Assembly (NCBI GenBank): GCA_002269645.1
Contig: NIVC01002519.1
Location: 62,001 to 126,000, forward strand
Source of the DNA: Macrostomum lignano
Lineage: Eukaryota
DNA: 64,000 nt
Direction of reading: 5' to 3'
A program made the translations under genes and the position numbers. Below are positions 2,450-43,230 of this stretch, piece by piece. Position 1 is the stretch's first letter. The number at the start of each line of letters is the position of its first letter. Under the pieces are notes generated by a model. It saw nothing but the letters and a program-made list of their open reading frames with translations, did no database searches and was not told the DNA's origin.

Positions 2450-2499
<50 letters not shown>

Positions 2500-10260: not shown

Positions 10261-10381
10261 CCATTTACATTATTTCAAGTGTAGCTCCCAGCTACATGTA
10301 CTTCACAGTTTCCATAGCAATTCTCTAAACAGTTATTTTCCCATTGCAGCCAGGCTTTCCTGTCAATCAACCGATCGCTCC

Positions 10382-10660
10382 ATGCCACCAGGCGGCAAGA
10401 TCAGGCAGACGGTGCTGCAGCTCTATCGAGACTTTCTCCGGCTCGGCCGCCAGAAGCCGGGAGTGGCCGACTTGGCCAAACGGGAATTCCGCCGGCAAAG
10501 CCGCATTCCGGCCAGCGATGTTGTCCGGATTGAACAGCAGGTGCGAAGAGGCAAACACCTGCTCGCTACTTTAAGTAGCCAACACGTGACTGGTATTGGT
10601 AGCATGGGGCCGCCTGTGCAGTCAAAGATTGACCCGGCTTCTACGGCTTCTAAATCTTGA
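10382..10660 (+). CDS. SDHAF1: Succinate dehydrogenase assembly factor 1 (LYR family), 92 aa, single coding exon
   Basis: MPPGGKIRQTVLQLYRDFLRLGRQKPG...REFRRQSRIPASDVVRIEQQVRRG matches the SDHAF1 pattern (VLSLYRDLLRAGRGKPG...EFR...SDVLRIE...RRG). ATG at 10382, acceptor TTGCAG at 10349. Confidence 0.88.
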   Translation: MPPGGKIRQTVLQLYRDFLRLGRQKPGVADLAKREFRRQSRIPASDVVRIEQQVRRGKHLLATLSSQHVTGIGSMGPPVQSKIDPASTASKS

Positions 10661-17690: not shown

Positions 17691-17727
<37 letters not shown>

Positions 17728-20700: not shown

Positions 20701-21645
20701 AGACAATTCTCATAATTTGAGAGACGATTCTCATAATTTAAGGGACGATTCTCATAATTTAAGAAGGGCGATTCTCATAATTTGAGAGACGATTCTCATA
20801 ATTTGAGGGACGATTCTTATAATTTAAGAGACGATTCTCATAATTTGAGAGACGATTCTCACAGTTTAAGAAAGGAGATTCTCATGATATAAGAGGCGAT
20901 TCTTATCATTTAAGAGAGGCGATTCTCATAATATAAGAGTGGCGATTATCATAATTTGAGAGACGATTCTCATAATTTGAGAGACGATTCTCATAATTTA
21001 AGAAAAGCTATTCTCATAATTTGAGAGACGATTCTCATAATTTGAGGGACGATTCTCATAATTTGAGAGACGATTCTCATAATTTGAGAGACGATTCTAA
21101 CAGTTTAAGAAAGGAGATTCTCATGATATAAGAGGCGATTCTTATCATTTGAGAGAGGCGATTCTCATAATTCAAGAGACTATTTTTGTCATCAATATAA
21201 GGGACTATTATCACTTTGTCCTAGTAACCTAGTTAAACCAAAGTAATAAACTGGCAAAGTGCAACATTAAACGAACCTGGAGCCGGCCATCTAAAGTCCT
21301 GGGTATAGTGATGCAACAGGTCGTAGTTGCCCCGGCACTGGTGACACTCTGAATCAGTGCGTCAAGTTCTTCTCGTTTTTCTTTCAGTTTTTTAACCAGA
21401 GACTCAATTGCCCGCTTGCTAAAGCCTTCCGATTCGCCTTCGAGCCTGTGCTGCATCAGCGAGTGCACTATTGACAAGCAGGCATCTGAGGAGGTCACGT
21501 GACTAGTAGGTCCACTAATAATCGCGTGATTTGAGGCATTTACAGGCTGTCTAACGGTGGTCAAGTTGCTGCCGCCAGCAGACAGAGTTGGAGACGAGAT
21601 GGAAGCTGACGGACTAGGAGATGTTGGACTTGCTAATTGAAGCAT
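13739..21645 (-). CDS. SMAD4: Co-Smad (Smad4/Medea), about 501 aa, 4 exons (21645-21277, 20470-19895, 17284-16997, 14011-13739)
   Basis: All introns are GT-AG, phase 0. MH1: [22 protein letters not shown]|[22 protein letters not shown]2: [16 protein letters not shown]...[17 protein letters not shown]...SFVKGWG...[12 protein letters not shown]...LLDEVL. No C-terminal SSXS. Confidence 0.96.
14163..14496. mobile_element. MITE-like element with 18-bp TIRs, copy 1 of a local duplication
   Basis: CTACTTTCAGTTCAGTAG ... CTACTGAACTGAAAGTAG, with AAG on both flanks. Confidence 0.6.
14577..15000 (+). mobile_element. 3-prime fragment of a LOA/R1-group LINE
   Basis: Encodes [16 protein letters not shown] and [13 protein letters not shown]...RYLRAT, homologous to the 3-prime part of ORF2 at 32068-32450. 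Frameshifted. Confidence 0.75.
15397..15725. mobile_element. Second copy of the 14163-14496 MITE-like element
   Basis: Same TIRs and homologous flanks (GATACTAGAATAA...GCTGTTTT). Confidence 0.6.
16050..16295. repeat. Minisatellite of CCGGAAGT-core units, array 1
   Basis: Repeated (T/A)GACCG(G/C)AAGTAATTTGTT units of 20-24 bp. Confidence 0.9.
16645..16890. repeat. 21-bp minisatellite of CCGGAAGT-core units, array 2
   Basis: Repeated AAAAATGACCGGAAGTGATAT. Confidence 0.92.
17690..18480. repeat. 28-bp minisatellite (TGTCTGCCTGTCTAGATATGTCTGTCTG)
   Basis: Directly visible in SMAD4 intron 2. Confidence 0.95.
19150..19880. repeat. 12/24-bp minisatellite (GATAGACTGGCAGATAGATACA)
   Basis: Directly visible in SMAD4 intron 2. 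It explains the long repetitive ORFs here. Confidence 0.95.
20570..21180. repeat. 21-24-bp minisatellite (GACGATTCTCATAATTTGAGA)
   Basis: Directly visible in SMAD4 intron 1. Confidence 0.95.
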
Positions 21646-24102
21646 TGTTTTTTAGTCTATAAAAATAATTATGTAGTTTGTCTAATCCCTGATTACAACC
21701 AGAGCAGAACAGGTTAAATAGTGCAGACTTGCCAGTGGGTTGTGCAGCAGAAATAGAATTTAGACCATCATGCAGTAATGGCATGCAAACGATTACATAA
21801 TTGGCTATAGTAACAATTCAAAAATCAAGGATACAATCTATTCTAAAAAATATGTCAGTGTATACAACATTGTACTATAGTCAAAAAGAGACATTACCAA
21901 TAGTCCAGCTCATTAGACTTACCCCCCAGAGATTTCTGACAAGATTTCTAGATTTCTAGATATCTGTTAGAAGTTTGTGAAATAGCCTTGGCATTAATTA
22001 TCTGGCATAAAAAATACATGATATTTTGGTAAACTGTCTTTCATTAAAAAACAAATTGTAAACTCTAAAGGCCTAACAACTTTTATATTCTTATTATTTT
22101 AGTTAATTTTATATTTATAATTTTTAATTTTATTATATAAAAATGCATTCAACTTTTTAATAAAAAAATCAATGCAAAGTTATAATGTCATTGCCACATT
22201 TTATACCTTAGTCATAGATTTTTGCCACCTTTTCTCCTAGTCAATTACACTAGACATACAGCTGAAGACTGGCCCAAATGATAAAAATTAAAAAAAATTG
22301 TATCAAGAAACCTAAACAAGCAAAAAATAGACTATTTTTTCTAAAAATTAGTGTCTTTAAATTAGTGATGGATCCAAATATTTGGATTTGAAATCTGAAT
22401 CCAAAAAATGTATTTTTTTTTAGAAATATTAATGTTTTTAGATTGGGAAATTTTTTTCTGAATATTTTTCAAATGTGCTTCCAAATATTGGAAAAATCAA
22501 GAAACCTAAACAAATTCACATTTGTAAAAGAAACAAAACTTTTGAAATAAGAAAGTATATAAAAAATGCAAAATTTTATGTCATATTGTTCATTTTTGCA
22601 GTAACAAATTTGAAAAAAAGTTATATAAAGTTAAATTATTAAAGTATAAGACCTTTGAAGCATTTAACCTAAAGTTGCAGAAACATTTATGGCAATCATT
22701 GTTTAAGTATAATCATTAGTTGGTTTTTTTTTCAAAATGCAAATGCAGACTTTCAGACTACAGTAAATGGTTTTCAAGAACATTCTCAAATACAAATGTA
22801 ATGTCAATTAGTATTAGTAATTATATTAGCTAGATTAGTTATATAGGAATTATGATCAATTCAAACTTACTTACTCTTTAATAAGTTTTAATTCTTATAG
22901 CCTAATCTTACTTGAATTTTGTTTAAAGAATAGAAGTCTTAGTTGCTTACTTAGATCATAAATTAGACGCTGAGATATTTTTGTTACTTAAAAGTGTCAT
23001 AGTTATTCTTGCCATTTACCTTTTACTTTTTGCTTATATTTGGAAACATATTTGGATATTTGGATTTGTATTCAGAACTTTTTGTACATTTGGTTTTGGT
23101 TTTGAAAACTTATAAAAATTTATATTTGGTCTAGGCGTATTACTACATAATTCCTTTTTCTTTTTTAATAGACATAATTTATCAAGTTGTTTCTAGACTA
23201 AGGACAACTAAGCTAACCTATCGGTATTGAAAAAAGTGAGAATTTTGTCAAAGTTGACAGTTGGTATACATCACTCCTAAGAAAATAGTGCATGGACCTA
23301 TGCATACCTAGCATTCACTTTATAAAATCACGTGGAAGATTTAAGCTATTGTATGCAAAGTAGAAAAAAAAGATAAAAAATTATTTTTAAGCATAAATTT
23401 TAAGCCTTCCAGGTTTTTTAGGCTTGTAATAAGTATTTAAACAAATCTTTATATGTATTGATTTTTTGATATAAATAATATTGCCAAAAAAGTATTAAAA
23501 AACCAGCTAAATTATCTGCTAAAAAGGGTACATCATGCAATTCAAAAAAGGTCATTTAATGTTGCAACATTGGTGTAGTTTTGAAAATAGATAGGCCTAT
23601 ATAGTCAATTATTTTTTTTAATGTATTTGTATTACATGCATTTGTAAGCCTAATTATACAGTTTTTTATTTGAGCATATAGGCCCCTACCCAGCTGCAAG
23701 CATGATCTAGACTAGGCCTATGGAAAGTATAGACATCATTTTCTGGCATGGCACTACATTGTGACACCAATAGGCCTATATATATTTAAAAAACTACTTT
23801 TAAGTTTTATTTTAAAGTTGCCTTTTGAACAGGGTTTTTTTTTGTGCGCAGAGTGTGCGTATGCACCCTAAATTTTAAAATCGCACCCTGAAATTAAAAA
23901 AGTAGGTACGGTTTAGGTGCAGTCTTATAACCATTTTTCTTTAAAGGCTTAACCATGCTTAAGCTATTTTTTATGCACTGCCTTAAAATATGAAACAAAA
24001 TAACTCTTTAAATCCTATTAAGTCATATAGGCGATATAGCCTATAGCTATAGCCTTATGTAAGATATTAAAATATACATTCCCAGTTGTCAGAAATGTGA
24101 GC

Positions 24103-26389
24103 AATGTGAGGGTTTCACGGGAGATATTCAGATAGGGGCTCCCTAAAACACGCCCCGCACCGGGCCCCGAACCGCTACACATTATAACATTTTTTGTCAA
24201 TGCAGTATTTGATTGCAAGGAAAAGTTAAAATAGTAATGGAAGAAATATCTTTATTTATTTATTTAAATATTATAATTTTTTTTATATTCTCATTTTCAT
24301 TATTAATTTATAATATTATTATTTTATTAATATTATTATTAATATCACTTATTGTTCACCGAATTTTATATTTCAAAGTAAAAAAACTAAATTTAATAAA
24401 AACTTGAAGCTTAACAGAAAACGCATTCTGAAGTGTCTTTAGTTATAGTCCAATTTGTTTTAATGTGTAGCGCTGCAGGGCGGTGCGGGGTGTGTTTTAG
24501 GGAGACCCATTCAGACAGACATTCAAAATGATTGTCTGTAACTTCAAACAAAATTGACCCGCTTCAACCATCTTTTTGGCAAATACTTACGTAAGTGTTG
24601 GGCGTCGAATAAGCTTTAATTTATTAACTGAAGTAAAAATCCTTCTGACATACATTGATTTAAAAATTGCTTAGCAACACTAGCTCTGATTAGAAATCGC
24701 TTTACTGTTGACTAAAATTGTTTTGATCGTAGCAGCCTAAAAGCAGATACTGGATTTAAAAATGCTTCGATTTACTCTATATGCATGTCTCAGCTTTAAA
24801 ATGACACCTCAGGTGTTGCAAAAGACAGCTTTGATGCTGAGATATTCGACACTAAACATTGCTTTGCTCAAACTCACATTCGGAAACTTCACTGATTTTT
24901 ATTCAATATTTGTTCAGATGCTTGTCTACTTCTCCATTTATTAACCATCACATGGAGCCTTGCTAACGTACAAGTGTATGTAGTTACTGTAAATGGGGTT
25001 TTTGTGACTCACTTAAACTTGTTTACGCATTCTGCAGCTATTCGCCGCCTTTCATTGGAGTGATTCATGGAGTCCAGTTGATAAATTTCCGCAAATTGGA
25101 TTGCTTCTACATCAGATCTCAACATTTGGAACCATCCTTGAACTATTTCAGAGTTAAGTGAGCTAATGGCATCAAATGGAAGGCTAGTGCTCATACTCGT
25201 AAGCGAAGCAGGTTCACAATTGAAATGGTTGTATTCATGGCCATGGGATCTAAACTGATCTGTTTTACTTTCACGATCGCTTCGGTCTCCGAAGGAGCAG
25301 CAGTTGATGGACTGAGGTGAGAAGAAGATGTGTCACGACTTGAGCTGTTTTTAGAAAATATCTTTATCCAATTAAATATTTTCATGCGGCTCCTTAGGTT
25401 GTTCCGAATTCCGAGTCTAGAAGTCAAGACAAAAAAAGTTAAGAACTGCTACGGTAGTCCATAGGGATTGGAAAGCTTAGCAGTACATTAGAAATCGCCT
25501 GTTCAATCTAAAAAGTTTGAAGTACATATAGCTATTGGGTTGCAACAACAGTAGAAAAAATTCTTCCTTTTTATTTTATTCCCACCGCTTACCTCATTCC
25601 GATTTGGATAGCAGAATTGCCACGCAAAAAAAGTAAAAACATAACAATAAACTATTTGCTTCATATTAATTGCCACTGACTGTTAATAAACGCAACGTCA
25701 ATTTCTCTCAATAACAGTTGGAACATGTTTCTTGAACACTCGTATATTTATTTGAACCGCAAAGCGGTGAAAAAGTCATGATTGGTCGCCATATATACAA
25801 ATGTATACTCACAGACTCACTGACTCAGGTACAATCTATGCAATATAAAGGCAGGCATCATTAAAAATCAAATACTTAAGACAGTTTAGGAGAAGTCCAG
25901 GTTTAAACTGGACATGACTAGAATTTGACAAGTTTCTGATGAAAAAACAAGGACATGGCAGCTGCACAAATATCAATAAAAATCAGTGAAATTTCTGAAT
26001 GTGAGTTTGCGCAAAGCAATTGCTTAGTGTCAAATATCTCAGCATCAAAGCTGTCTTTTGCAACGCCTGAGGTGTCATTTTAAAGCTGAGACATGCGTAT
26101 AGAGTAAATCGAAGCATTTTTAAATCCAGTATCTGCTTTTAGGCTGCTACGATCAAAACAATTTTAGTCAACAGTAAAGTGATTTCTAATCAGAGTGTTG
26201 CTAAGCAATTTTTAAATCAATGTATGTCAGAAGGATTTTTACTTCAGTTAATAAATTAAAGCTTATTCGATGCCCAACACTTGCGTAAGTATTTGCCAAA
26301 AAGATGGTTGAAGCGGGTCAATTTTGTTTAAAGTTACAGACGATCGTTTCGAATGTCTGTCTGAATATCTCTCGTGAAACCCTCACATT
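24103..26389. mobile_element. Non-autonomous DNA element with ~430-bp TIRs and ~1-kb interior
   Basis: 24103-24134 plus 24518-24925 is the near-perfect reverse complement of 25955-26389. No transposase recognised and no TSD resolved. Confidence 0.75.
24135..24508. mobile_element. Mutator-like MITE inserted in the left TIR of the larger element
   Basis: TIRs GGGGCTCCCTAAAACACGCCCCGCACCG / CGGTGCGGGGTGTGTTTTAGGGAGACCC. 9-bp TSD ATTCAGATA (24126-24134) / ATTCAGACA (24509-24517). Confidence 0.75.
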
Positions 26390-26936
26390 CTAAACAAGAC
26401 TCAAGAGAAATTGATTGAGCACGCGAAGGCGTATTCAGCATGCCAGTGAAGTATGAGACAGACTAGGCCCATGGGCTAAGGTCTGCGATGCTTCACGCCT
26501 GCCCCTATCTTCAGCAGGTCAAGGCTGGTGGGAGGTCTGCACCCTCTATTTGCCTCTGGCAGCCGCAGACCCCCCCCCACGCTGTCTCGCAAGTCGACCC
26601 AGGGTACTCGTCCCCGCGTGTGTTCAAGGCAGTCCCTAGGGCTGCTGGACAGACTGGGCTCCGGCGCTGGCGACCCTATCCAGTGGCTTCGGCCGAATTT
26701 GGGTATGCGGGTCTGGCTCGCCAACCTGCAGGCCGTGGTACTGCTCAATGTACTCTCTAATGCCTAAGGTGTTGACCGTGCCGATGGGCTGGAAGGCCGG
26801 GGAGTAGTCCGGTCGCAAGCGGTCCCCCTCCTGGTGTCGGGCCAGCCTTGAGGGTGCTATTGGCCTACTGCCCGGTCAGGTGGAGCGGCCGGGTGGGTAC
26901 CGCGCCCCTTTGAGGGTAGCCCACCAACCTTTTATC

Positions 26937-28442
26937 ATGGCCTTCGAGCCGACTATGGATAAACAAGCTATTTCTAGGGACGGGGACCCTTCTAAACCCC
27001 AACCTCAGTCCGAAGGACCGGCCGGCCCTGCTGGCAGATCCCAACCGACTGATTCAACTGTGGCAAAGGAAGGACCGGCTGGCTCTGCTGGCAGATCCGA
27101 CCAGAGCTACCAAACTCAAAATACCCTAAGACCTGCCAGCTCCGCTGGTGGATCTAAAGGAACCGCGAGCTCTGAGCCTAAAGGACCGGCCAAATCTGGC
27201 AGATCCGATGAAGCTCAGCGGGCTCGGCTTGAGCGCAAACGCGCTAAACAACGCGCCAAAAGGCAGGCCAAGAAGGGAGCTGCGGGGGCCAAAGCGGCGG
27301 CGTCCACCATGGATGCTGAAGCGACTGGAGTCCCAAGGCAACCAGGCGGGCCGGCCGGTGGAAGCTCCAGTAGTTCAGCGGCGGCGCTCCCTGGAGCTGC
27401 TGCCGCGGCTGCTGAGGCCGAAACCACGGCGCAACAAATGGCCACTGCCAACAAGGAGGTTCCTTCGGGAGCTACCTTTGCGGCGAAGGCCAAGGCCAAA
27501 ATCCCGGGAGTGATCATCCAAGGTCGCGACCAGGACTGGACCACTGATCAGCTTCAAAAAGTGTGGAGTGCTGTTGACTCCTATCTGATTGAGCTGACTG
27601 TCGAGGAGGGAATCTCCATCGGCGTTGAGCGGATGGTGCTGCGAAGCACATTCGTTCTTATTGCTCCTAGCAGCGAGGAGGACGCTCGGCGGCTGCTCCA
27701 GCGGCTACTGACGGTCTCCTTGGATGCTGACCTTGGTGGAGCTCTTTTTCTTCGCGAGGGCCAGCGTCCAAAGACGATACCCTATGTGGTTTTCGTCCCT
27801 GCTAAGAGCACCGCAGCTGGACCAGACGTTATTCGCCGGGTCCTACTGCGTCTGAACCCCGACCTCCCTACTAGTGGACTGGTGTATCACCGCAAAGTCC
27901 GCAGGGGGGAGACGGGCAACTCAATTGTCCTCGGCCTTTCCAGCACTTGGGCGAGTCGGTACCCTAATGGATCCTCTTTCCAGCTGGGTGCCCTCAAGCT
28001 CAAGTTGCGCCGAGGAAAGTCTGCCAAAGGGAAGGCTACTGCCAACCCCGGCATCTCCGGCAAGAGCGGGGCGCAGTCTAAGGCCCAAGGAAAGGCGCAA
28101 GCCGATCCCAAAGCCAAAGCTGCATCTCGCCCCTCTGCTAGCAGCAGTTCGGCGACCGCGGTAACGGCTCCGGCCGAGCCCCGGGAACCAAACCTGCCAG
28201 TCGGAGAAGGAGTTGAGGACGAGGCCGGGTCTTCGGAATCCGAGCTCTCCTCGGCCACCTTGGTGGGGTCTGAAGGTAAAGATGCAGGTGAGGAAGCTTC
28301 CTCCATCCTGTCATCGGAGCCTGAGGACTCTGCTGGGGGGGCCGGTGGGGGTGAGGAGGCCATGGACGTCGACCAACTCCCATCTCCCAGTCAAGCCCCA
28401 GCGGCCTGGGACGAGGACGATCTGTTGTCCAAGTCTCCTTGA
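26937..28442 (+). CDS. LINE ORF1 (gag-like, basic and low-complexity ends, no CCHC knuckle seen)
   Basis: Open frame of ~500 aa from ATG 26937, ending 39 nt before ORF2. Confidence 0.8.
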   Translation: MAFEPTMDKQAISRDGDPSKPQPQSEGPAGPAGRSQPTDSTVAKEGPAGSAGRSDQSYQTQNTLRPASSAGGSKGTASSEPKGPAKSGRSDEAQRARLERKRAKQRAKRQAKKGAAGAKAAASTMDAEATGVPRQPGGPAGGSSSSSAAALPGAAAAAAEAETTAQQMATANKEVPSGATFAAKAKAKIPGVIIQGRDQDWTTDQLQKVWSAVDSYLIELTVEEGISIGVERMVLRSTFVLIAPSSEEDARRLLQRLLTVSLDADLGGALFLREGQRPKTIPYVVFVPAKSTAAGPDVIRRVLLRLNPDLPTSGLVYHRKVRRGETGNSIVLGLSSTWASRYPNGSSFQLGALKLKLRRGKSAKGKATANPGISGKSGAQSKAQGKAQADPKAKAASRPSASSSSATAVTAPAEPREPNLPVGEGVEDEAGSSESELSSATLVGSEGKDAGEEASSILSSEPEDSAGGAGGGEEAMDVDQLPSPSQAPAAWDEDDLLSKSP

Positions 28443-31400
28443 TGGCCCTGGGCTCTAGCCAGATATTGCATTTAATACAGTATGACTAAGCTCCACGCTG
28501 CCAAAGGAGCGACATTCTGTCTGCAAATAAATTTACAGCATTGCGTATCTGCGTCAGTAAATCTGATGAAGATTGCTGAGCTGTACAGGCCAGGCCTCAT
28601 CCTGATCCAGGAACCCTGGATGCGCAACGGTAAGTTGCCCAACATTCCCTCTGGCTACTCTGATTTTTATGTGTGTGGCCCGGGGAACAGCCGCCCTAGA
28701 GCGGCTATCCTCGCTGCTAGCCATCTCCAGGCTTGGCTGAGGACTGATCTCTCTGATGGAGACCTTTGCGTCATCCAATCTAATCATTTCTCTCCGCGTA
28801 CGTGTCTTGTTGCCTCGGTTTATATCCCAGGCGACAGAGACCCTGCTCCGAGAGTTTACTGCGCCTTGCGCAGTACTGCGAGTCCCAGAACGCTGAGCTG
28901 TGCTTAGGGGGCGACCTCAACGCGCACCACAAGCACTGGGGCAGCAAAGATACCAACACTAGAGGAGAGGAGCTTCTGGCCCTCATCTCTAACACAAACC
29001 TCATGCTCTGCAACCGCGGCAGCACTCCTACCTTTAATAATGGCAGATGGACCGAGGTCCTCGACGCCACACTCGTTACCCCAAGACTCTTTGACAGAGT
29101 CAAGGAGTGGAGAGTCTGGTCTGAGGAGCCCTCCCTGTCTGACCACTGCTTTATCGCCTTTAATATCGCGGACACTAAAACCCAGTCTCCGATCACTTGG
29201 AGACGCAATATCCGCAACACTGATTGGGCGGCCTACAAGGCTGCCCTTGATCTGCACCTGCAGGAACTCACGGACTTACGTCCGATTGAGACCTGCGAGG
29301 ATGTGGATCATATGGCTGAGACGCTGACAGGTTGCATTATTGCAGCCTACGAAGCGGCTTGTCCTGCTCGCGCCTACAGAGGCAAGACCTCGGCGCCGTG
29401 GTAGAACCCGGAGCTGGGGAAACTCAGGCGGAAGGCCAAAAGCCTTCATCGCCGTGCCATGAAGACCGGAAACCCGGAGGACATGGAGCTTTTCCGGCAA
29501 GCCTCCCGCAATTTCAAATCTGAAGTGCACAAGGCCAAGGAATGTAAGTGGCGCCAATTCTGCAATGAATTGGATCAAGACAGACCTACTTCTAGGCTTG
29601 TCAAGGCCCTTACAATGGACAAAATGTCCAAATTAGCCATGATAAAAAAGATGATGGCTCTCTTACTAAAGACCCTGAAGAAGTGCTTCAGCATATGCTT
29701 AGCACATTCTTCCCGAGGGTACCTACTGCTAGACCGGAGCCCAACCATTCGATGGATGGAGCCACCCTAGCGGCGGGCATTGTCACTGAAGACCTAATCG
29801 CTCGTGCGGTCAGAACCTTCAAACCCTTCAAATCTCCTGGACCTGATGGTATCTACCCTGTTCTCCTTCGTGAAGCAGCCAAGATACCCTCGTTCCTGAG
29901 ACTCACCCGCAATCTTATGCGGGCCTCTATCCAGCTGGGATACGTTCCCAAAAGCTGGACTGAAGCTCGAGTAGTCTTTATTCCCAAACCTGGGAAGGGT
30001 GACTACCAAAGCGTCAAGGCCTTCCGGCCAATTAGCTTAACGTCAGCAATGCTTAAGCTCACTGAGAGGCTTATTCTCTGGCGGCTGCTCTCCTGCGAGC
30101 TGACAGCGATGCCCCTCAGCAATAATCAGCACGCCTTCCGTACCGGGAGGTCGACTGACAGCGCCCTGCATGCGATTGTCGAAAAGATTGAACGGGCGGT
30201 ACTGGGTGACGGTTACGCCCTGGCTCTCTTTCTTGACATTGTTGGCGCCTTCGACAACGTTATCTTTGAAGCGTTTCAGAGGGCCCTTCAAAATCGCAAA
30301 GCTCATGCTACCCTCATACGGTGGATCATGTACATGATCTCCAACCGTACGGTCACTGCCCAACTTCTTGGGCAAACTGCCTCCACCAGAGTCTGTAAGG
30401 GTGGACCCCAAGGCGGAGTCCTCACCCCGACGCTCTGGAACCTGGTCATGGACGCTCTTCTGAGTGACTCCCGACCTGACCCCGTCTTCAAAGTCGGGTA
30501 TGCTGATGACGTCACGGCCATTGTGGCAGGACCGTCTCCCAGCACGCTCAGGGATCTGATGCAGAGCTTTATCCGCAAAGCAAATCCTGGGCCAATGACA
30601 ATGGTTTGGAACTCTCTGAGCCCAAAACCGTTGCCATTATGTTTACCAGCAGACTACGCTGGAACATACGTCCTCTGCAGCTCTACGGCAGAGATATTGC
30701 CTTCGCGCACCAGACCAGATGTCTCGGGGTCACACTTGACCACCGGCTCAACTGGTCCTTCCACGTGAAAGCAAAAGCTAAGCGTGCCTCAGCCATCCTG
30801 GCCCAGCTCCGACGAGCACTTGGCACTTCTTGGGGTCTATCCCCAAAGCGGCTTTGGTGGATCTATACTTCCGTAGTTAGACCTGCCATTACGTACGCCT
30901 CTGTTGTCTGGGTTAGCGCTACCCAGGTCAAAAGCCATGCAGACCTGCTCAACACGATCCAAGGCAGAGCGTGTAGGCTCATCTGCAACGCCACCAGGTC
31001 CACGCCCTTTGCTGGCATGGGGGCCTTTCTTAATCTTCCGCCTCTTGACCTCTTCATCAGGGGTGAGGCGGCTAGAACGACGCGGCGTCTAATTGATGCC
31101 GGCGTCAAATTCATTTACATGAGAGCACCTGCTAAGCGGAACCTTGTCCCGCATAGCGATCTGTGCCTCAACTTTCTCAACGAGTGTCAGGCCAATCGCG
31201 TCTTCACCGATGGCATTGCCTCAACGCTCAACCTGAGACAGCGCTACTCCGTAGCTATCGACTCGCGCGATAACATCAATGACCATTGGAACCCTGGTGA
31301 GCTTCATTGCTACACCGACGGTTCTAAGCAGTCAGCCAACACCGGCTTTGGTGTTGGAATCTTTCTGAACGGGAGGGTCATCGCTACCCACGCTCAATAC

Positions 31401-31787
31401 ACTGGGGTCAACTCCAGTGTTTTCCAAAATGAAGTTCTGGCCATCAGCTCCTGCACTGCAGAGCTTCTCGCCACTGGCGTTACTGGTAAGAACATCATTT
31501 TCCATTCGGACAGCCAAGCTGCCTTGCACGCCATCAGTGGCTGCAGCACCAACTCTGCTACAGTCCTTGACTGTATCAAACTCCTCAATGTGTTGGGTTC
31601 CGCCAACAAAATTACCCTTAAGTGGGTTCCGGGGCATGTGGGGATCCGAGGAAATGAGTTGGCTGACACCCTTGCAAAAGTTGGTGCCTCCGGCTCCTCT
31701 CTCGGCCCCGAACCTCTTGTCCCGATCCCTGGCTGTGTCATCGACTCGCGCATCAAAGCGTGGATCAGGACTCAGCACCGCTCGACT

Positions 31788-32067
31788 CCCTATTGCAGCG
31801 CATGGCTTAAGTACGCCAGACGCCTACACAACCTGCGCCACGCTGTGAAATGACTTACCTGTGAAAGAAACCCTAAAGCAAAATTAACGCAGTTTTGGGT
31901 AAACGGCAGGAGTAACTATGACTGTCTTATCAAGCCTAAATGCCTCGGCATCTAATTAGTACCGCGCCGCGCCGTACTAATCGCCGCGCGCCGTACGCGC
32001 CGCGCCGCGCCGTATTAGATCCGCGCCGGACGCCGTCCGCCAAAATGCCCATGCGCTGCAATCAGGG
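31788..32067. mobile_element. 280-bp MITE inserted in LINE ORF2
   Basis: TIRs CCCTATTGCAGCGCATGG / CCATGCGCTGCAATCAGGG. TSD CTCGACT at 31781-31787 and 32068-32074 (8 bp GCTCGACT if the right end is shifted by 1). Removing it restores ...TQHRSTWANRTNC. Subterminal CGCC repeats. Confidence 0.88.
31897..31960 (+). other. 28S rRNA-derived fragment (helix 69-71 region, R2/I-PpoI target) inside the MITE
   Basis: 54/64 ungapped identity by hand to the conserved eukaryotic GGGTAAACGGCGGGAGTAACTATGACTCTCTTAAGGTAGCCAAATGCCTCGTCATCTAATTAGT (recalled consensus). Not a functional rRNA gene. Confidence 0.85.
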
Positions 32068-34904
32068 CTCGACTTGGGCGAACCGCACGAACTGCAGGCA
32101 ATCCAGAGGCGCTGTCCCTCAGCCCTCTCACCAGCTCCGGAAGCTCCTCTTGCGCCTCTCGCGCAGAGACATCCGGGCTGCCACCATGACCCTCTCTGGT
32201 CACGGCTGCTTCTCCAGGCACCAGTACCTGCAGGGCAACGCCACCAACGCCACCTGTAGTTTCTGCAACTCAGGTGACGAAACCGCTGAGCATTTCGTCA
32301 GCATCTGTCCCGCCTTCACGCGGGCCAGACTCACTTACCTCGGGCCACACACATCTATTACTGAAGCGTGCAAACCCGAAAACTTTAATCAGCTCATGCG
32401 CTACCTTCGGGCCACCCGCAGGGCTGAACTCTCCTTTCCAGAGAGCACCATAGCTGCTGGCGACACTGGGGACCTCCCTGGGCCGCGCCAACCCTCCGTC
32501 CATAGCGACGCGTCGGCCGTTCAGGGACTAGCGGAATGGGCGCCCGCGCCTTCCCGCTGTGTCCCCTCCGGGACAGCCCTGCAGCTAAGTCAAGTAAGTC
32601 AAGAGAAATTGCACTCTGAGCCTTAAAATCGCACCTTGAAATTTGGCACAAGGTGCGATTTTGCACCTTATCTCTGGCGAAAAAAAAACCCAGCTTTTGA
32701 ATGCATATTTTGGCAAGTAATTGGACCCTTATTGAAGTCCCGACTCCCTACCAAAGAACAAAGTTAGGCCTAATATATTAATATTATAGCCTATACAATA
32801 CTACAATAGGCCTAGGACAAACACAAATGGAATTTGGAATAGTTATAGGCCCCTACCTATATATCTTCAAAAAATCAAAATTATTAGGCCTATTTAACAT
32901 GATTTTGACAGATTAATGGATTTAAAAGGTATTAGATAAAACATTAAAACAGCACTTGAAGTTGAAAATGAAAATGTCTCATTTAAATTACAAATATGAA
33001 AACTGAAAAAATTTGTTTGCTTAGGGCCTAATTACAGAGAACAGTACAGTTTTAGTTTTGCAATGTACTGTTTAAATTAAATTAGGCAATTTCTAGAGTT
33101 CTGGCACAAACCCATTTTCTAATAGCTATATTTATGGGTATAATATAGCAGAAACATTTTACTTTTTAACAGGTGGTTGATATTGAGATTTTGTTCAAGA
33201 TAGGCCTAAGATCAAAACGAAACGATGAGATTCAAATCAATATACTTCTTATGTTCAAGACTTCATTATTAGTAGATAACTGCCTGCCTGCAGAAGACTG
33301 CTGGATCATTAGCCATTAGAAAACGGGTTCCAGTGCCGGAACCCTAGCCATTACAATTAAATTAGGCAAATTAAGTAGCTTATTAACTATAAACTATGTA
33401 TCTTTAACACAGAACTATCTGATTTAGGTTTGTATTGCTGCATGTATAGGCCCTATATATTTAATAAAGTCCACGCATCTGCATGGTAGTAGTAGTAGTA
33501 GTAGTAAGTTTGGCTCAGGCAAAGAGCCTGTTTTGCCAATATGATTCGATGTATTTAATATTTGTTCAAAAGGTTGATTATTTCTTGATCGATTAATAGG
33601 CCCCTACGATTTAAATGATATTTTTATAAGTAGGTATTTGAAAGAGCGTCTGGAATTTTTACGGTTTTTTCGAACGACTAACGACTAACAACAGAACGAC
33701 AAGATTTTAAGAAGGGAATAATTATACAAAAACAGTGTGACGAATAAAGGCGGGAAGACGTACGGTTTGTGTAGCGGTTAAATTTAATAATCTAGAGCCA
33801 GCAGCCGACTTCCCTTAGCGTAAATTGCAGATTTGGTATGTTGAATTGAAGGTTAGGTTTGGATTGGTAGCTGCTTAATTTTAGTGCGACTAAAGCAATT
33901 GAATGCGACGGCTAAGGGGCCCGCGAGAAGCGAAGCGAAAACCCAGGAGTGAAGGGAGAGAGCGGCGTGGCTGACTGCAAGCGTATATTTAATTGGTAGG
34001 TAAACAGATAACAAACAACAACACCCCTAATCCAAAACCCAGACAAAATGTAATACATATAACCTGTCTATAAGTCTTTTGTTTTAAAAAAACCTAGAAT
34101 TGATGGTATCAAAAATTCAACGCATCTTAGCATATGTACCTGTAGGAGTGAAGCGACATGTAACCGACAGATACTGAAGAAAATTGCTAGTGTTGCACAG
34201 GTTGTAGCGCATGTATAATCGGGTGGTAGTCACTCGAAAACTCCCACTTCCAGACCTTAAGCCTAGCTGGGAACAAAATTCAGTGATCACTTGTGCGGGC
34301 TCCTCTTCTTTGCAGTCCGGGTTGCAGTTGCGCGCTTAAGAATTCTCGCTGTTGACTCTGAACGAAGTCGGCCGAATATGAGAGCACACTTTAATTAAAT
34401 TGTCGTCAATGTGTTCAATAAACAAAATCGGAGATGCGCCCTAATAACAAAGTCAATTATATAACAATAATAACGAGGTCCTCCAGGAAGGGCGTCTTCT
34501 TCTGGAAATAACAGAATCAGAGTCGTGTGCCCTTATCTGTTACTCTAGGGTATCAAAATCAATCAATTAAGAATCCTCTAAAGGTATCGGAATCTGTCTG
34601 CAGATCCTATCCAATCCCTTAGGAAAAGGGAAGGCCTCAAATTCAATAAACTCAGTAAAATTAACTGATTAGTAACAGTCGGTAATAACAAGGCTCTCAA
34701 TAATCAAATAACGAAGGCTCGAACAAAGACTTACCGAACGGTATTTATTTCCCTCAGAGATTTAGCCTCGCTTAGCTGCTCCCAGCAAGCTCAAGATATC
34801 TTTTGGAGGCTGCTCCGAGTCTGAGATTTTAGCTCGGATTTTTCGCTTGCATTTATAGGCAATTTTTGAGAAATATAAATCGCAACATAACTCATCTAGC
34901 TTAT

Positions 34905-36176: not shown

Positions 36177-36794
36177 TTAAAATATTTCGTCGCTAGCCGC
36201 CCGGTCAGCCTCCTGCTGGTCCACATCAACGAGGACGTCGTCTTCGGCGCTCTCATCCTCTGCCTGAGCATCCTGCTGGACATTGGCCGCATTGGCGCTG
36301 TTCTCTTCCTCAAAATTGTCTTCGTCCTCGTTCTCTGCTTGGTCGACCGCGTGCCGATTCTTGCTGGCTTTCTTCGACTGCTGGGTGCTGTCTTCGAATC
36401 TTTCTTCATTATCGTCTTCTTCGGCTGGGTCCTGCTCTTCTCCTTCTTCTCCATCTTCCTCTTCTCCTTCTCCTTCTTCTTCTTCTTCTTCACATTGTTC
36501 ACCTTCTTCTCCATCGTCTCCATCTTCTTGATCTTCGTCTTCACACGCCTGCTGTTCACTTTCATCCTCTTCCTCAGCGCCCTGGTCGGCATCGCCCCCT
36601 TCAACTTCCTCTTCCTCCTCTTCTTCTTCTGCTCCTCCGTCTTCTTGATCTTCGTCATTTTGCACCTCGTTGCCATCTTCTTCGAATTCATCCTCGCCAT
36701 CCTCAGCCTCATCTTTTGTCTGCTGAGTCAAATTTAGCTTGTTCTTGTTGTTAGCACTGCGGTTGTCATTGAGCTGGCAGCTTGAATCGTTCAT
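36177..36794 (-). CDS. Hypothetical very acidic, probably disordered protein, 205 aa (may be one exon of a larger gene)
   Basis: Open frame from ATG with about 92 of 205 residues D/E and mixed codons rather than a pure nucleotide repeat. No homology recognised. Confidence 0.55.
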   Translation of the reverse strand: MNDSSCQLNDNRSANNKNKLNLTQQTKDEAEDGEDEFEEDGNEVQNDEDQEDGGAEEEEEEEEVEGGDADQGAEEEDESEQQACEDEDQEDGDDGEEGEQCEEEEEEGEGEEEDGEEGEEQDPAEEDDNEERFEDSTQQSKKASKNRHAVDQAENEDEDNFEEENSANAANVQQDAQAEDESAEDDVLVDVDQQEADRAASDEIF

Positions 36795-38109
36795 GGTGAA
36801 ATTGATACTTTTTGACCATGCAGTTTCACAGATATGCGACAGATATGATATTAATATAGATTAACCTCCATCGGTTTTGTCGGCCATTTAATTAGGTTCG
36901 TCTTTTCCCGTGGAAGACCAAGTCTATGGTAAATTTTCAGTCAATTTGATTCTCAGTGCCGAAGACTAAAAAGAGGACTAAGAAATAAGTTTGAGTTTAG
37001 TATATTGTGATTATACTCAGTAGAACAGCAACAAATATGGAGGAACGGGGATAGGGAATGCAGAAATCGCAAAGCTTCTTATTTGGTCAACAGTCACTAT
37101 ATTTGGTCAAAAGCTAATGATAGTCCAATCAAGACTCACACCCATGTGATTCTGAATGGATTCAAGCGCCCATTCCACTTTGCGTCTCGTGCCATCGGGA
37201 ATAGCAGCCTGAAACTTTAACTGAACACCATGGTAAAACGACTAACTACCAGTATAGATGATGCTGTTGAAGCAATCGTCGAAGTAGAAGCAGAGGTTCA
37301 GTCTCTTATCTAGTGAAAAAGTTAACTCAATTAATACATAGCTTGGCTTTCATTAGACACTTTGCGTATGATATAAATGTGGGGGCTTGGACGTGCCACG
37401 TGCTGACTTTGCGATTGGGATGAATTTCTGTTGAATCTTCTGCTTCAACGTTCAGTAAAACTGCAGCCACCAACTGCCAATTCAGCTCTTGAAGGATCTC
37501 AGCAATAAATAGGATAAATCCACCAGCGAGAAGCATCTCGGAGTTCAAAGCTACTCTGCTCAGCCAGAAAAGAATATTCGCTGGAAGCGCCTCCGTTGAG
37601 ACTGCGGGAACTGTCGGATGTGACCAGTGACAAGACGTCGCAGGCATTAGCCTAGCAAACAAAATGATTCTGTGATATATTTTTTCTTGAAACAATCGCT
37701 TTAAACACTCTCTGTGCGTTACATCTCAACAACGCTACAGAAAACATATTCAGTAGCATTTTAGCATAAGGTATTTTCGATAAGCTGTCTGCTTTTCACT
37801 TTGGTTTTAGACGAGAAAAAAATAGCATTTGAAAGCTTGTGGATAAAATTAACAATGCAATTGTATTGCTTCAACTAGCTAAAATCTAATTGACTTCTCA
37901 TACATTTTAAAACAGAAAAAGTATGCAATTTTAAGCTCAATCTCAGCTACTGTCGCTTTTCACTTGGGGCTGAAAAAATCTGCATGTAGTGAACAAATTT
38001 ATCCTGTCGGTCAAGTCAACCCACTTTAAGGATATTCGCTCACGAAATCATGTGAGTGATCAATATGTACATCTATCAGTCTATGAGTCTGGTATGCTGA
38101 GTACTCGGG

Positions 38110-39250
38110 CGGGAAGGAGTGCGAGTCTACCGGACTCTCATCAAGTCTCCAGATGAAGCTCCAGGGATACTTGAAGCGGCAAGAAAACTGCTCAATGAGC
38201 ACTTTCAGTTTCAGCCCACCATCAGCGTGTATGCCAAGCGCTATGACTTCCGGCTGTGCATCCAGCGGAGCGGCGAAGGCGTGCACGCATTCGAGGCAAA
38301 CTTGCGTCATGCCACCCTCAACAACTTCGCCAGCGTGCACAGGAGCAGCACTGCGGCACCGAACTCGGCTCGGAAAAAGATTGAAGGCGTCGACTTCGAC
38401 AGCTCCGCTCAACAAAGAATCTTTGCCGTGAGCACGGACGAGAAGGGCGAGTACAAGAGAGCCAGCGTCGGGATCCCCTGCGACCGTTTGGGAGACAGCT
38501 CGTGTCATAAAACGGCTCCAGCATCAGCGTCTACGGCGGGGTCAACGCCACGGTTGAGTTCGACTGCGTCCAGCTCCCGTCGTTTACCTTCACCGTCGTC
38601 ATGAACGGCGATGACCTGATGGAAATCTACCTGATGGACAAGCTGAACTGCAGAGTTCTCGGGCCTTCCAGACATCAGATTGCTGCGGTCGAGTCCCGAG
38701 GAGTCTTCGACCATGTCGATACCCGAACTGCCTCTAGCGCTGTGCCATGAGTGCGACAGCGAGATTCAACGCCCGCTGAACTGATGCTGGGACGGAAGCT
38801 CCGCCTGCTTCTCGAGCGTCTTCAACCAGCAAGCACCGAGTCAACGACGGACCAGGAACTGCGGCGCAGCGTCACGGAGCGACAGCAGCAGGCCAAATGC
38901 CACCGTCGGCTACGCAAGCAAAACCACCCGCTGAAGGACGCAGCGCTGACAGTCTGGAGCCGCGTCCGCGTCCGCCGGCCGAGGCGCGGAAAGCTCAGCA
39001 GCGGCTTTTTCGAGCCGCAGACAGTCGTAGTCGTGAGGGCAACACGATCACTTTGTTCGATGGCAGCCGCTGGCACATCAGCCGCCACATTCTGGATGAC
39101 CACCACGGCTGGGGTGACGGGGCCGACGACACGGAGGCTCCGCAGCAGCCTGACGACTGGCAACCAGAGGTGGCGACGCCAATGCCACCGCTGCACCGCT
39201 CTGAGAGACTTCGCACTCTGCATCTAGCTGCAGAACGACCTCTCCTCTCC
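38110..39250 (+). mobile_element. Degenerate Ty3/Gypsy LTR-retrotransposon internal remnant
   Basis: Gag-like KRYDFRLCIQRSGEGVHAFEANLR and integrase-tail-like TPAELMLGRKLRLLLERLQP. Many frameshifts, no LTRs seen. Confidence 0.65.
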
Positions 39251-39741
39251 TTCCCTCGCAACGCCTGCGTTGGCTTTGTTCATTTGGCTGGCAGCCATAA
39301 CAGCTTCATTGTCAAATAGGCAAAAATACTGCTTTTTAGGCTGATAGCTTATGGCGCATGAATGTGTTAAGCTAGCTGCAATATCCCAAATGTTCCACAT
39401 CTAACGGGCACATTAGATTCATAAAAATAGCTCTGATCTAAAATTTCTCTTTGAAGAGAGGGGTTTGATAAAGCAGGTACTCAAACAATAAAAGCACTTA
39501 AATTCATACTCAGTGCTTTGATTGAATTGAAAATAAATTGCTAGAGAAATTTTTTAACTCTTTGATCAACGGTTGCCTAGTAACCTGTAAACATTTCTCA
39601 ATGCATCGAGTTGTCGATAAATGGCTCAGTAAAAGAGCCGGCGGCAGAAGCGCGGTGCGACTGCTTGTGCGCCCCTTACTAGCTGCTAGAAGCGCTTCGG
39701 CTCGAGACAGACGTGTCGCTGGGAGTCCCACTAAGCCTGCT

Positions 39742-40914
39742 ATGGTCCTGCTACTCGCTGCTCTGCTGCCACTGAGCAACACCTCCGGTTACTTCAGCTC
39801 ATCGAACATAGGCATAGGAACGGGGGAGGGCAGTGGGGCGGGCCATGCCCCCCCCCCCACTTTTAAAAATGGGGGGCCAGTAATGGTATCTGGCCCCTCC
39901 ACATTTTAAATGTAAAATGTGGACTTCTTGTTTATTTTTGGTTTTTGCTGCTTTCCACGAATGCATTTTGCTGCAGGGCGACAAAACATAGCGCCTGCAG
40001 CGCCAAAATGAGTGCCTGCGGCGCTAAAAGGCGGGCCTGCGGCGCCAAAATAAGTGCCTGCGGCGCTTTATAAAATGAGTGCTGACCAGATGGAGTCTGA
40101 AAATAATCGGTACATGATAATGTGCATTTTCCATATAAAAAAATCTAACTCGACCGGGGCGTGCGCCCTGTGCGCCCCCCCCCCTAAATCCGTCACTGAA
40201 CCTGCCCCCCCCACTTTTTGAAACGTTCCTACGCCTATGTCATCGAAGGCTAGCTGTGCATCAGGAGCGACTTCGTTGAAACTGCTACGGAGGCCGGATC
40301 TGTGACAGCTTGCGCCATCCGATGCCATTTTAACCCGAGCTGTCAGGCGTCAGGCGTTCAGCCTGGCTGACGGTCCGTGCCAGCTGTTCGTGTTCGACAA
40401 GTGCAGCAAGTCAGTGAGGGACTGCGGCTGCTCCAGGAGAGGCCGGGTGTTTGTGAAGCAGCAGCCGGGACTCGAGGCGGGCGCGCTGTGTCCGTCTGGC
40501 TACGGAGACGACCTGTGCGGAGTGAAGTACAAGCTGCACTTTAACGCCGATTTCTGGTGGCCGAGCAGACAGAAGTGCGAGTCGGAGAGCGGTCTGGTGA
40601 TCATGGCCGACGTGGTGGACGCCTCCGAGATGAGCCACGTGGAGACGATCTACAGCAAGTACAGCGCCGGATTCACGATGTGGCTCGGAGGCTACCGGAC
40701 TCCCGGAAGTCCCGAGCCGAGAGGCGGCTGGCACTGGGCCAGCTGCAACATCACCATTGACGACAGCCTGTGGAATGCGGTGGAGCCGGGCAACTTCGGG
40801 CCACATGGCGAAAATGTAATCGGCCGATATCACAATTCGAACAACCTGGCTGATTTCTGGGAGTCGTTGGAAAAGTACAGAGTGCTGTGCGAGTGCGTGT
40901 CGCCGTTTGTTTGA
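39742..40914 (+). pseudogene. Secreted PAN/apple-like + C-type lectin domain gene, disrupted
   Basis: Signal-like MVLLLAALLPLSNTSG, PAN-like CAIRCHFNPSCQAFSL...CQLF, and CTLD WLGGYR...GGWHW...WNAVEPGN...VLCEC. Broken by a MITE, a frame discordance and a 7-bp duplication TCAGGCG (40343-40356). Confidence 0.7.
39807..40239. mobile_element. hAT-like MITE
   Basis: TIRs CATAGGCATAGGAAC / GTTCCTACGCCTATG. Perfect 8-bp TSD TCATCGAA (39799-39806, 40240-40247). Confidence 0.88.
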
Positions 40915-41292
40915 GCTGTGGAGAGGCCAATGAATCCGATCATGCAATGCTGGTTATTAAGTTTTTAACTCAAACGCAACCTTTTAACGCAATAACCTGT
41001 CTTTTACGATAATAACCAGTCTTTTAACGCAATAACCTTTTAGCGCAATAGCCAGCCTTTTAATGAAACAACCTGTATTTTAATCACTTTGAAACTGTCT
41101 GATTATAGCAACAATGAAGTTATTCACACGCTTTCCGCAGTTTCCAGAGTTCTGAAGTTGAATTTCGAAATAAAATTCTCTCAAGTTTAAGTCTGACATA
41201 TTTAAAATAACGGGGCCTGATTAGAATCTACCTGCAAACCAAATAATAAAAGAATTAATACTTCATTTATTTCATACATTGATCATGGACAG

Positions 41293-43230
41293 TGCTGCCC
41301 CAGTGAGTATGGTGGGCGTTTAATCAGAGAGGCGAAGACCTCCTAGCCTACGTTGCCTCTACGACCCTCGAGTTCTGCAACTCTGGGTCCACTCCTACTT
41401 TTGACAACGGACGGTGGTCGGAGGTGATCGACGCAACGCTCGCAACACCCAGGCTCTACCTCTACAAGGCGTGGCGAGTGCTTCCAGTGTCCTAACTCTC
41501 GGATCACAAGTTCATCTCCTTCAACCTGATGGCCGCGCGTAGCGCAACTCGTGTTACATGGAGACGGAACGCCAGAAATACTGATTGGGAAACCTTCGGG
41601 CTCGCTCTGGAGGAATTCCATCGGTCTCCTGGCCAACCATCCACGATCACGTCGTGCCGAGAGGCGGATGAGTGCGCGACTGTGTTGACAGAAACGCTAA
41701 CCGCCGCCTTTGAGGCATAAAGGTAAAAAATCTGCGCCGTGGTGGAATCCCGAGCTCGGCAATCTCCGTCGCAGAGCTAAGAGACTCCACCGCAGAGCAA
41801 CTAAAACTAAGAGCCCAGCGGACCAAGCCGCCTATCATGAAGCAATTCATGAGTTTAAGAGGCAGGTTAGGAATGCAAAGGCTCAGAAATGGCGACAATA
41901 CTGCCAAGAGCTAGAGGGTTCACGCCTCACCTCCAAAATTGCAAAAGCGCTTACGCTGTGATTTTCATCCCTAAGCCAGGTCGCCCGGACTACCATTATA
42001 TCAAATCCTTCAGACCAATCGGCCTGACCTCCTCCCTGGTCAAGCTGATGGAGAGACTGCCAAAGCACGGCGCCTTCTCTCTGTAGAGCTGAAGAACAAG
42101 CCCCTCAGAGGCGTTCCGAACAGCTCTTTGTGAGAGGCAAACGCACTCACATATCACCGGATGGATCATGTACATGATTAGCCATCGCACGGCCACCGCC
42201 AGTCTGCTGGGCCACCAGAGGACGGTCCCCGTCTGCAAAGGTAGCCCGCAAGGTGGGGTGCTGTCTCCAGTTCTATGGAATATGGTCATCGATGAGCTCC
42301 TTCGGGATGCTCGGCCTGACCCCATTCTGAAAGTAGGATATGCGGACGGTGTTACCGCGGTGGCATCTGGTCCGTCCCCTGACACCCTCAGGAACCTTCT
42401 TCAGAACTTTATCTACGCCGCTGAGCAATGGGCGGATCGTTGTGGTCTAAAGCTCTCTGAGACTAACACCGCAGCGATCATGTTCACCAGCAGGACCAAG
42501 TGGCAGATTCGGCCGCTCACGCTTTACGGAAGGGAAATCCCCTTCTGCAAGCAAACTAAATGTCTAGGTATTACCCTGGACCACAGGCTGAACTGGTCAC
42601 CCCATGTTCATGCAAAAGCAAAAGAGAGCCCTCGCAATCCTCGCGCAACTGCGATGAGGCTCAAAGAATTGAGAGACGGCGACGGGCTCCACGTCTTATC
42701 TGACGGCGAACCCCGCACTCTCAACCTCTTTCAGCGCTACAAGGTCACCATCCCCTCTAGGAATGTTGCCACTGACCACTGGAATTTCCAGGAGGTGCAT
42801 TGCTACACGGACGGATCCATTAAAAACGGCCATGCCGGCTTTGGGGTCTGCATCATCATCAACGGCCGCGTCATTGCCACGCATGCCCAGCACACTGGCA
42901 GACTCTCCACAGTCTTCCAGAACGAAGTCCTTGCCATCAGCTTCTGCGCTGCAGAGCTGAACTCCAAGGGTACGAGAGGAGATACTAGATTGTCATGCAC
43001 TCCGATAGCAAAGCGGCCTTACTGGCCCCTCTGCCACACCACAACGAACTCCCGGACAGTCGCCGACTGCATCCGGCAGCTCAACCTCCTGGCCAGTAGC
43101 AATATTGTCAGGCTGAAGTGGATCCCAGGGCACGCTGGGTTTCCGGGGAACGAGCTGGCAGACACCCTCGCCAATAGGGCGACCCCGCCTCCCCGCTGTG
43201 TCTACTCTGCAGCTAAGTCAAGTAAGTCAA
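41293..43230 (+). mobile_element. 5-prime truncated, multiply deleted LOA/R1-group LINE
   Basis: 12-bp TSD GATCATGGACAG (41281-41292, 43231-43242) and the same TAAGTCAAG tail. Remnants of APE, PWWNPEL, RT (GSPQGGVLSP, YADG) and RNase H (YTDGS, WIPGHAG). Confidence 0.9.

Follow-up and report, generated by a model that had tools for sequence, protein, structure and literature searches.

Host DNA acquired in repair or replication, and usually without function, is carried by short elements with terminal inverted repeats (TIRs) such as the Pack-MULEs and the transduplicating hAT and CACTA elements, and the cargo of Pack-MULE-type elements usually consists of protein-coding fragments. The mammalian SINE28 derives from a part of the 28S gene other than the one discussed here. 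Pokey has termini of the CCC...GGG type, and the proteins of R2 retrotransposons contact the sequences that flank their cut site. Actinopterygian R2 families have a 28S-like 3' UTR and replace 110-130 bp of the 28S gene on insertion (Kojima et al., 2016, PMC5035012). A link between DNA transposons and an I-PpoI-like nuclease has been described in KolobokP, a group with target site duplications (TSDs) of 4-5 bp and long terminal direct repeats (Kojima and Bao, 2022, PMC9587614). The Dada elements have no TIRs, generate a TSD of 6-7 bp and insert in multicopy small RNA genes (PMC3706591). Pokey (with IGS sequence), SINEs and TRIMs derived from 5S, and SINE28 are named as transposable elements with rDNA-derived sequence in a 2024 review of the interplay between rDNA and transposable elements. 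No MITE with 28S cargo was found in the table of that review, in agreement with the initial annotation of the present locus, which knew of none.

The locus described here lies in a 64-kb stretch of Macrostomum lignano DNA, referred to below as the window, from the Mlig_3_7 assembly (GCA_002269645.1), which represents the DV1 line, was generated from PacBio, Illumina and 454 reads and amounts to ~764 Mb. Assembly DNA surrounding the SMAD4-like gene of the locus is 100% identical to window 3739-31645, which places the window at 62001-126000 of contig NIVC01002519.1. A genuine MITE-like insertion with TIRs and a TSD occupies positions 31788-32067 (280 bp) of the window. The element had been delimited in this way, with a TSD of 7-8 bp, in the initial annotation, and both its ends and the restoration of the interrupted frame have now been seen. 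The left TIR (CCCTATTGCAGCGCATGG, 31788-31805, plus strand) and the right TIR (CCATGCGCTGCAATCAGG(G), 32049-32067, minus strand) were located by a pattern search and an inverted-repeat scan. Paired with the reverse complement of 32049-32066 the left TIR shows two mismatches, and paired with that of 32049-32067 it shows a single 1-nt indel. When up to three mismatches were allowed, the TIR pattern had only two matches in the 64 kb, where 0.01 would be expected. The element is flanked by direct repeats that are 100% identical (GCTCGACT, at 31780-31787 and 32067-32074). The G at 32067 can be assigned to the TIR or to the duplication, so the TSD, as judged from this one copy, measures 8 bp with an element end at 32066 and 7 bp (CTCGACT) with an end at 32067.

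The insertion interrupts ORF2 of a LINE, past the part that encodes RNase H and ahead of the C-terminal zinc knuckle. When 31788-32074 (287 bp) is taken out and 31787 is joined to 32075, ORF2 becomes one uninterrupted frame, and its alignment with a JGI metagenome homologue of 57% identity runs over the junction without a gap (HRSTWANRTNCRQSR versus HKDRWANTLDYRQSR; in the wider alignment ...WIRTQHRSTWANRTNCRQSR... versus ...WVASLHKDRWANTLDYRQSR...). A paralogous, more distant LINE fragment at 14596-15004 is likewise uninterrupted across the insertion site. Since 287 bp is 2 modulo 3, the MITE shifts the ORF2 frame, and the protein stops after 21 element-encoded residues. Stop codons are present in all six reading frames of the 280 bp, and the MITE is thus without coding capacity. 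The predicted RNA fold of the element consists mostly of TIR pairing (z=-2.7) and is uninformative.

Several superfamilies were considered for the element and rejected. The TIRs of hAT transposons start with YARNG; the TSD at this locus is possibly 8 bp, but the termini are CCCTA and CCCTG (or CCTGA) rather than CAG/TAG. Membership of piggyBac, and of Pokey in particular, was rejected on the flanks, which are GCTCGACT on both sides and not TTAA, and on the insertion in a LINE ORF2 rather than at the TTAA of 28S. The clear TIRs and the LINE target speak against the Dada superfamily, and KolobokP is ruled out by the 4-5-bp TSDs and direct repeats of that group.

The host LINE (26414-32598, plus strand; 6185 bp including the MITE) encodes APE, RT and RNase H domains and a C-terminal CCHC motif, assigned from Pfam and, for RNase H, from homologues. 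Its boundaries were taken from the paralogous locus L005, in which the empty site (5254-5266) reads ...AAGACTCAAGAGAAATTGCACTC... The LINE ends at its 3' side in ...TAAGTCAAGTAAG and is bounded by a 13-bp TSD, TCAAGAGAAATTG, at 26401-26413 and 32599-32611. Its top protein match is a Macrostomum lignano UniRef entry with 85% identity, and the best named homologue is 'loa-3'. Two paralogous copies of the locus were reached by way of the SMAD paralogues and adjacent genes. Contig NIVC01002086.1 matches the window collinearly at 97.8-99.9% identity and is without 26414-32598; contig NIVC01000184.1, which is ~89-96% identical to the window, is likewise without the host LINE. The absence of the LINE from two paralogous loci, together with a 13-bp TSD in unique DNA, shows that it is young and does not lie in rDNA, and it follows from the same absence that the arrangement of a MITE within a LINE is recent. 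This indicates that the LINE inserted after the paralogous copies of the locus had diverged and that there has been recent LINE activity in M. lignano DV1. The MITE either entered the LINE later still or was already present in the source copy of the LINE and was carried with its RNA. The host had been taken for an R1-group LINE, with the remark that this context might be coincidence. The MITE does lie inside a LINE, but not in an R1 element resident in rDNA: the target TCAAGAGAAATTG is in unique DNA, which is not what R1-type site-specific insertion into 28S would give. Given a non-rDNA target with a 13-bp TSD, the LINE context of the MITE is coincidental. There are several frameshifts in the host LINE, which could reflect decay or PacBio indel errors.

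Other repeats were noted around the LINE. An inverted repeat pair of 414 bp (24509-24921 and 25958-26366, ~94.5% identical) bounds an element of ~1.86 kb with an annotated ORF of 64 aa, which ends 47 bp from the LINE insertion point and is probably another DNA transposon or a foldback element; the paralogue that is more distant (L006) is without 23767-26413. A second LINE with RT and RNase H domains lies at 38000-44000, shows 53-62% amino acid identity to the host LINE and is also found in NIVC01002086.1. The third LINE, the fragment at 14596-15004, corresponds to the C-terminal part of ORF2 with ~50-60% amino acid identity and spans the MITE position without interruption.

More than half of the M. 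lignano genome is repetitive and 180 Mb of it lie in near-identical duplicated blocks. Short and unclassified repeats were filtered out of the Mlig_3_7 repeat libraries, and transcripts that overlap repeats were dropped from the GenBank annotation; it is because of this filtering and removal that the LINE and the MITE are unannotated. A look-up of the LINE and MITE ORFs found no record. The host genes of the window encode an L27A-domain protein (1713-3163), an ankyrin-repeat protein (5276-7933), a Complex1_LYR protein (10352-10660), a SMAD4-like protein (BOX15_Mlig023763g3, 13739-21645, to which an exon of the window shows 98% identity), a 205-aa protein of no assigned function (36177-36794) and an SLC4-type bicarbonate transporter (~46000-60200). 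The first four are found at all three paralogous loci, with SMAD4 partial on NIVC01000184.1, and the last two on two contigs only. Dense tandem arrays are present within the ankyrin-repeat gene (34 bp x31, 5837-6885), just past the upstream end of the SMAD4-like ORF at 19118-20539 (21 bp x29, 20555-21184), within that ORF (22 bp x27-30, 19185-19880) and, with 47 perfect copies of a 13-bp unit, at 63392-64000, where the window ends within the array. For the M. lignano genome a tandem-repeat content of 15% has been reported, and such density is in line with it.

On the evidence of sequence similarity the centre of the MITE (31897-31967, plus strand) is homologous to helices 69-71 of 28S rRNA, in sense orientation. 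The conserved 28S sequence used for comparison agrees with the upper-case Rfam consensus. Identity to it is 54/64 over 31897-31960, and the Rfam match runs on to 31967. No rDNA was found when the 64-kb window was scanned with Rfam at gathering thresholds; in a permissive scan of 31600-32250, model positions 2200-2314 of LSU_rRNA_eukarya were matched at 31852-31967, with 25.2 bits and E=5.8e-4. The core is also the best 28S-like tile in the window, with a score of 90 against a background of ~25. Its ten differences from 28S are at core positions 11, 27, 33-38, 40 and 51, and seven of them fall within the eight nucleotides at 31930-31937 (plus strand), where AGGTAGCC of 28S has become TCAAGCCT. 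Within this block fall the R2 nick site and the greater part of the I-PpoI site, the intact 28S sequence of the I-PpoI/R2 target region being, we assume, TTAAGGTAGCC. Among one million random placements, clustering of this degree had a probability of 6.1e-5 under uniform scatter. The resemblance to the helix 69-71 region at 54/64 and the concentration of seven of the ten differences in one 8-nt block at the R2/I-PpoI/Pokey site were the central claims of the initial annotation, and both have held.

The scrambled block abolishes the TTAA, the position of the GG/TA nick and, by our own count, six of the 15 bases of the I-PpoI site; in the adjacent TTAA the last A (31930) has become T, giving TTAT. 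In a gapped alignment AGGT is replaced by TCA and an extra T follows AGCC, and in this form the scramble looks like one compound event rather than seven separate hits. Outside the block the identity of the core is 95% (92-96% in the ~30 nt on either side), and counted from the cut site there are two mismatches in 33 nt upstream and one mismatch and one insertion in 25 nt downstream. A diverged extension of the 28S homology towards helix 68 (31852-31896, plus strand) is possible; it is included in the Rfam alignment and has, by our own count, ~53% identity. The stretch upstream of GGGTAAACGG (31859-31896) is marginal (anchored shuffle P=0.026; not significant in an unanchored test). Pairs are broken in both hairpins, H69 and H71, of the Rfam alignment, which indicates that the rRNA structure is not maintained in the MITE. 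Downstream, the homology ends near 31967, ~30 nt beyond the R2 site, so that the R1 site, which we take to lie 74 bp downstream of the R2 site, is outside the captured piece.

The rest of the interior is a patchwork, in which ~110 nt without a clear match are followed by the ~70 nt of 28S and then by 19-bp repeats. The repeats (31961-32014, plus strand) are GC-rich, comprise 2.8 copies of the unit ACCGCGCCGCGCCGTACGA, as detected by TRF and as direct and inverted repeats, and begin at the 3' edge of the 28S piece. A 13-nt hairpin (31955-31967 with 31969-31981) is built on ATTAGTAC of helix 71. Repeats and hairpin at the edge of the 28S piece look like slippage and snap-back products of repair synthesis, to judge from their arrangement. 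Two weak motifs resembling the 28S site adjoin the TIRs. One, CTTAAGTACGCCAGACGCCT (31806-31825, plus strand), follows immediately on the left TIR and matches CTTAAGGTAGCCAAATGCCT of 28S at 15 of 20 positions in an ungapped alignment (own count), with P=0.007 against the 35-nt site and P=0.08 against 190 nt of 28S. The other, GCCAAAATGCC (32039-32049), adjoins the right TIR and has P=0.11. Individually the motifs are marginal, with P ranging from 0.007 to 0.11 by search space, and amount to a hint. An internal-duplication model of the MITE interior was tried and was not significant.

Further copies were sought in the window and in three paralogous stretches, which together make up the M. lignano DNA covered. 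BLAST of the element and the TIR pattern search found no second copy in the 64-kb window, and none was found in the three paralogous stretches. Exact patterns for TIR-gap-TIR and for the scrambled block had no matches in metagenome, GTDB-genome and IMG/VR contigs, collections with hardly any flatworm DNA. At the protein level, a six-frame translation of the MITE was compared with 5.8 billion proteins, a search of doubtful sensitivity, and there was no match at E<=1 among the 8000 candidates listed; a 41-aa frame of the MITE gave only weak repetitive matches of at most 42 bits, and no copies, among 1.84 billion representatives. No transposase domain was detected by Pfam in the 20 large ORFs of the window that were scanned. 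It is the TIR/TSD anatomy of one copy that suggests a MITE family.

A second 28S-like piece lies 9 kb away. It was found by BLAST and a shuffle test at 22955-23020 on the minus strand, in DNA of 26% GC, and appears as an older, AT-decayed version of the same H69-H71 segment, reading GGTAAATGGCAAGAATAACTATGACACTTTTAAGTAACAAAAATATCTCAGCGTCTAATTTATGA. Aligned to 28S it scores 43, where shuffled sequences average 21 (sd 1.9, maximum 28). Its flanks show no 28S similarity, so that it covers the same ~65 nt as the MITE core. The piece is kept in all three paralogous loci (the window, L005 at 8648-8707 and L006 at ~8828-8890) and must therefore predate their divergence. At the contested site it has TTAAG-TAAC, which is nearer to 28S than the MITE is, and as it keeps TTAAG-TA the scramble is not shared between the two. 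In the best alignment one nucleotide is missing from TTAAGG and one is added ahead of AAAT. Two of the three scattered substitutions of the MITE are also found in the old piece (GGC-A-GG and CTCx-G-C; GGCAGGAG, CTCGGCATC). By a rough estimate the sharing of two variants has a chance probability of ~P=0.04; alternatively, host 28S with these bases would explain it. About 150 nt downstream of the 28S-like end there is a weak match to the right TIR (P=0.009, one of four tests), and apart from this the flanks of the old piece show no similarity to the MITE arms. A possible decayed right TIR was noted at 22757-22803. A relationship between the old piece and the MITE would place the origin of the scramble later, in the lineage of the MITE; without one, the same 28S segment would have been deposited twice within 9 kb. 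The presence of a piece with the same boundaries at this distance hints that the module may have a greater age and persistence than expected of a one-off capture, and it is the most interesting loose end of the locus.

The explanation to which we give moderate credence is that the element is a non-autonomous cut-and-paste MITE with passenger 28S DNA and one compound lesion. A transposase supplied in trans would recognise the 18/19-nt CCCT...AGGG ends and make a staggered target cut of 7-8 bp, and the present copy would have landed in ORF2 of a young LINE, shifting its frame and truncating its protein. Some 70 nt of host 28S (helices 69-71) would have been acquired when the element formed, by template switching or by filler synthesis in gap repair. 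The 8-nt scramble would then represent a single compound mutation (net AGGT to TCA and a 1-nt insertion) and not an adaptation. We infer a capture of this kind, mobilisation in trans and a lack of function for the 28S piece. Gene fragments are carried in a comparable way by other transposons, and transposable elements with rDNA-derived modules are already known (the IGS/ITS2 of Pokey, SINE28 and the 28S-like 3' UTR of fish R2). Two features of the sequence argue against a neutral passenger. It is striking that the lesion sits exactly on the most contested cleavage site while the close flanks are kept (P ~6e-5), and the core, with 95% identity outside the block, is far better kept than the putative upstream extension (~53%). 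Closest to the passenger explanation, if unlikely, is the possibility that the 28S donor was already damaged at the R2/homing-endonuclease site and that the scramble is a scar or junction inherited at capture. The donor could have been an rDNA repair scar, an aborted R2 insertion or a junction between an R2-type 3' UTR and true 28S, carrying TTATCAAGCCTAAAT or a precursor of it. R2 is known in Platyhelminthes, and the fish R2 families provide a precedent for a 28S-like 3' UTR abutting true downstream 28S. The gapped form of the lesion, a small replacement over the GG/TA nick with a 1-nt insertion downstream, amounts to a -1/+1 register shift rather than to scattered substitutions, and the register shift recurs at 22955-23020 in the deletion within TTAAGG and the insertion before AAAT, which fits a scar or junction. 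The indels of the old piece are, however, in a decayed A-rich context in which the alignment is ambiguous, and a damaged donor does not sit well with the alteration of the downstream half of the MITE block as well (T insertion, T to G).

The 28S-like sequences might instead be remnants in a relic or derivative of a Pokey-like DNA transposon that lived in 28S, or targeted it, at the R2 site, a history that we regard as improbable. Site-like motifs just inside both TIRs (CTTAAGTACGCCAGACGCCT, P=0.007, and GCCAAAATGCC) would be in keeping with it, as would the CCCT...AGGG termini, which we take to resemble piggyBac-type ends. Pokey and mPok, moreover, have an rDNA-derived interior, and the one TTAA of 28S at which they insert has flanks consistent with the garbled site. 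The TSD of 7-8 bp is nevertheless not TTAA, the copy is found in a LINE instead of rDNA, the strong 28S piece occupies the middle of the element rather than flanking it, the subterminal motifs fade against longer 28S (P=0.08; P=0.11 on the right side), and there was no transposase gene among the large ORFs of the window that were tested. Functional explanations have a lower probability again. It is very improbable, on our estimate, that a transposon-borne copy of H69-H71 has persisted since before the duplication of the locus (as 22955-23020) and is still mobilised, with its flanks kept and its cleavable centre lost, so that R2-type or I-PpoI-like proteins might be sequestered by it or rRNA-directed small RNAs templated on it. 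Extremely improbable in our judgement is a family that disseminates a version of the R2/I-PpoI target which cannot be cleaved and which would serve to lure proteins, as a decoy, or to supply guide RNA or RNA complementary to rRNA. The near-28S flanks around a destroyed cut site and the youth of the MITE-in-LINE arrangement are what such a decoy or guide would predict, but the rRNA helices are not preserved, the older piece keeps TTAAG-TA, and one genomic copy could not titrate a protein. The initial annotation had raised the decoy, the guide RNA and a relic of an rDNA-targeting DNA transposon as interpretations, and none of them finds support here. Finally, an assembly chimera or misjoin must be considered in a PacBio-based assembly in which only ~64% of bases are error-free by REAPR and in which the LINE frameshifts could be indel errors. 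A misjoin would not give rise to a perfect TSD, to TIRs that match and to a frame restored exactly on removal, which are signatures of transposition, and this leaves an artefact hardly conceivable.

A MITE with 28S cargo thereby joins the few transposable elements listed with rDNA-derived modules, the module here being recognised by an Rfam E-value of 5.8e-4 and an identity of 54/64. It also flags a recently active pair of LINE and MITE in a model flatworm whose short unclassified repeats are outside the published annotation. If there are many copies and the garbled site is conserved among them, they would represent the first known case of a DNA-transposon family that distributes an inactivated version of the most heavily targeted site in eukaryotic rDNA, and rDNA-specific elements could then be linked, in a testable way, to a mobile element unrelated to them.

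The element may be compared with several known systems. KolobokP is similar in its connection with an I-PpoI-like nuclease, the founding member of whose family cuts the same 28S site, but no 28S-like sequence has been reported in KolobokP and the group has not been reported in flatworms (PMC9587614); no gene for an I-PpoI-like nuclease was seen in the window. Pokey and mPok of Daphnia, which belong to piggyBac, are alike in being a DNA transposon and MITEs tied to the same region of 28S and in having an rDNA-derived interior. They differ in their TTAA duplications, in their presence both in rDNA and elsewhere and in a cargo of IGS/ITS2 rather than 28S, whereas the M. lignano MITE has a non-TTAA TSD of 7-8 bp, lies in a LINE and carries a 28S copy that is without the TTAA. 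The fish R2 families are likewise mobile elements with a diverged copy of a 28S stretch adjoining the R2 site (PMC5035012). They are, however, autonomous non-LTR elements resident in rDNA, as opposed to a TIR/TSD DNA element outside rDNA, and the 28S piece of the MITE, unlike theirs, spans both sides of the R2 site. SINE28 of mammals, as it is presented in the 2024 review, resembles the MITE in being non-autonomous and in having a body derived from 28S rDNA, but it is a retroposon without TIRs. From the Pack-MULE-type elements, finally, the M. lignano MITE is set apart by its rRNA cargo.
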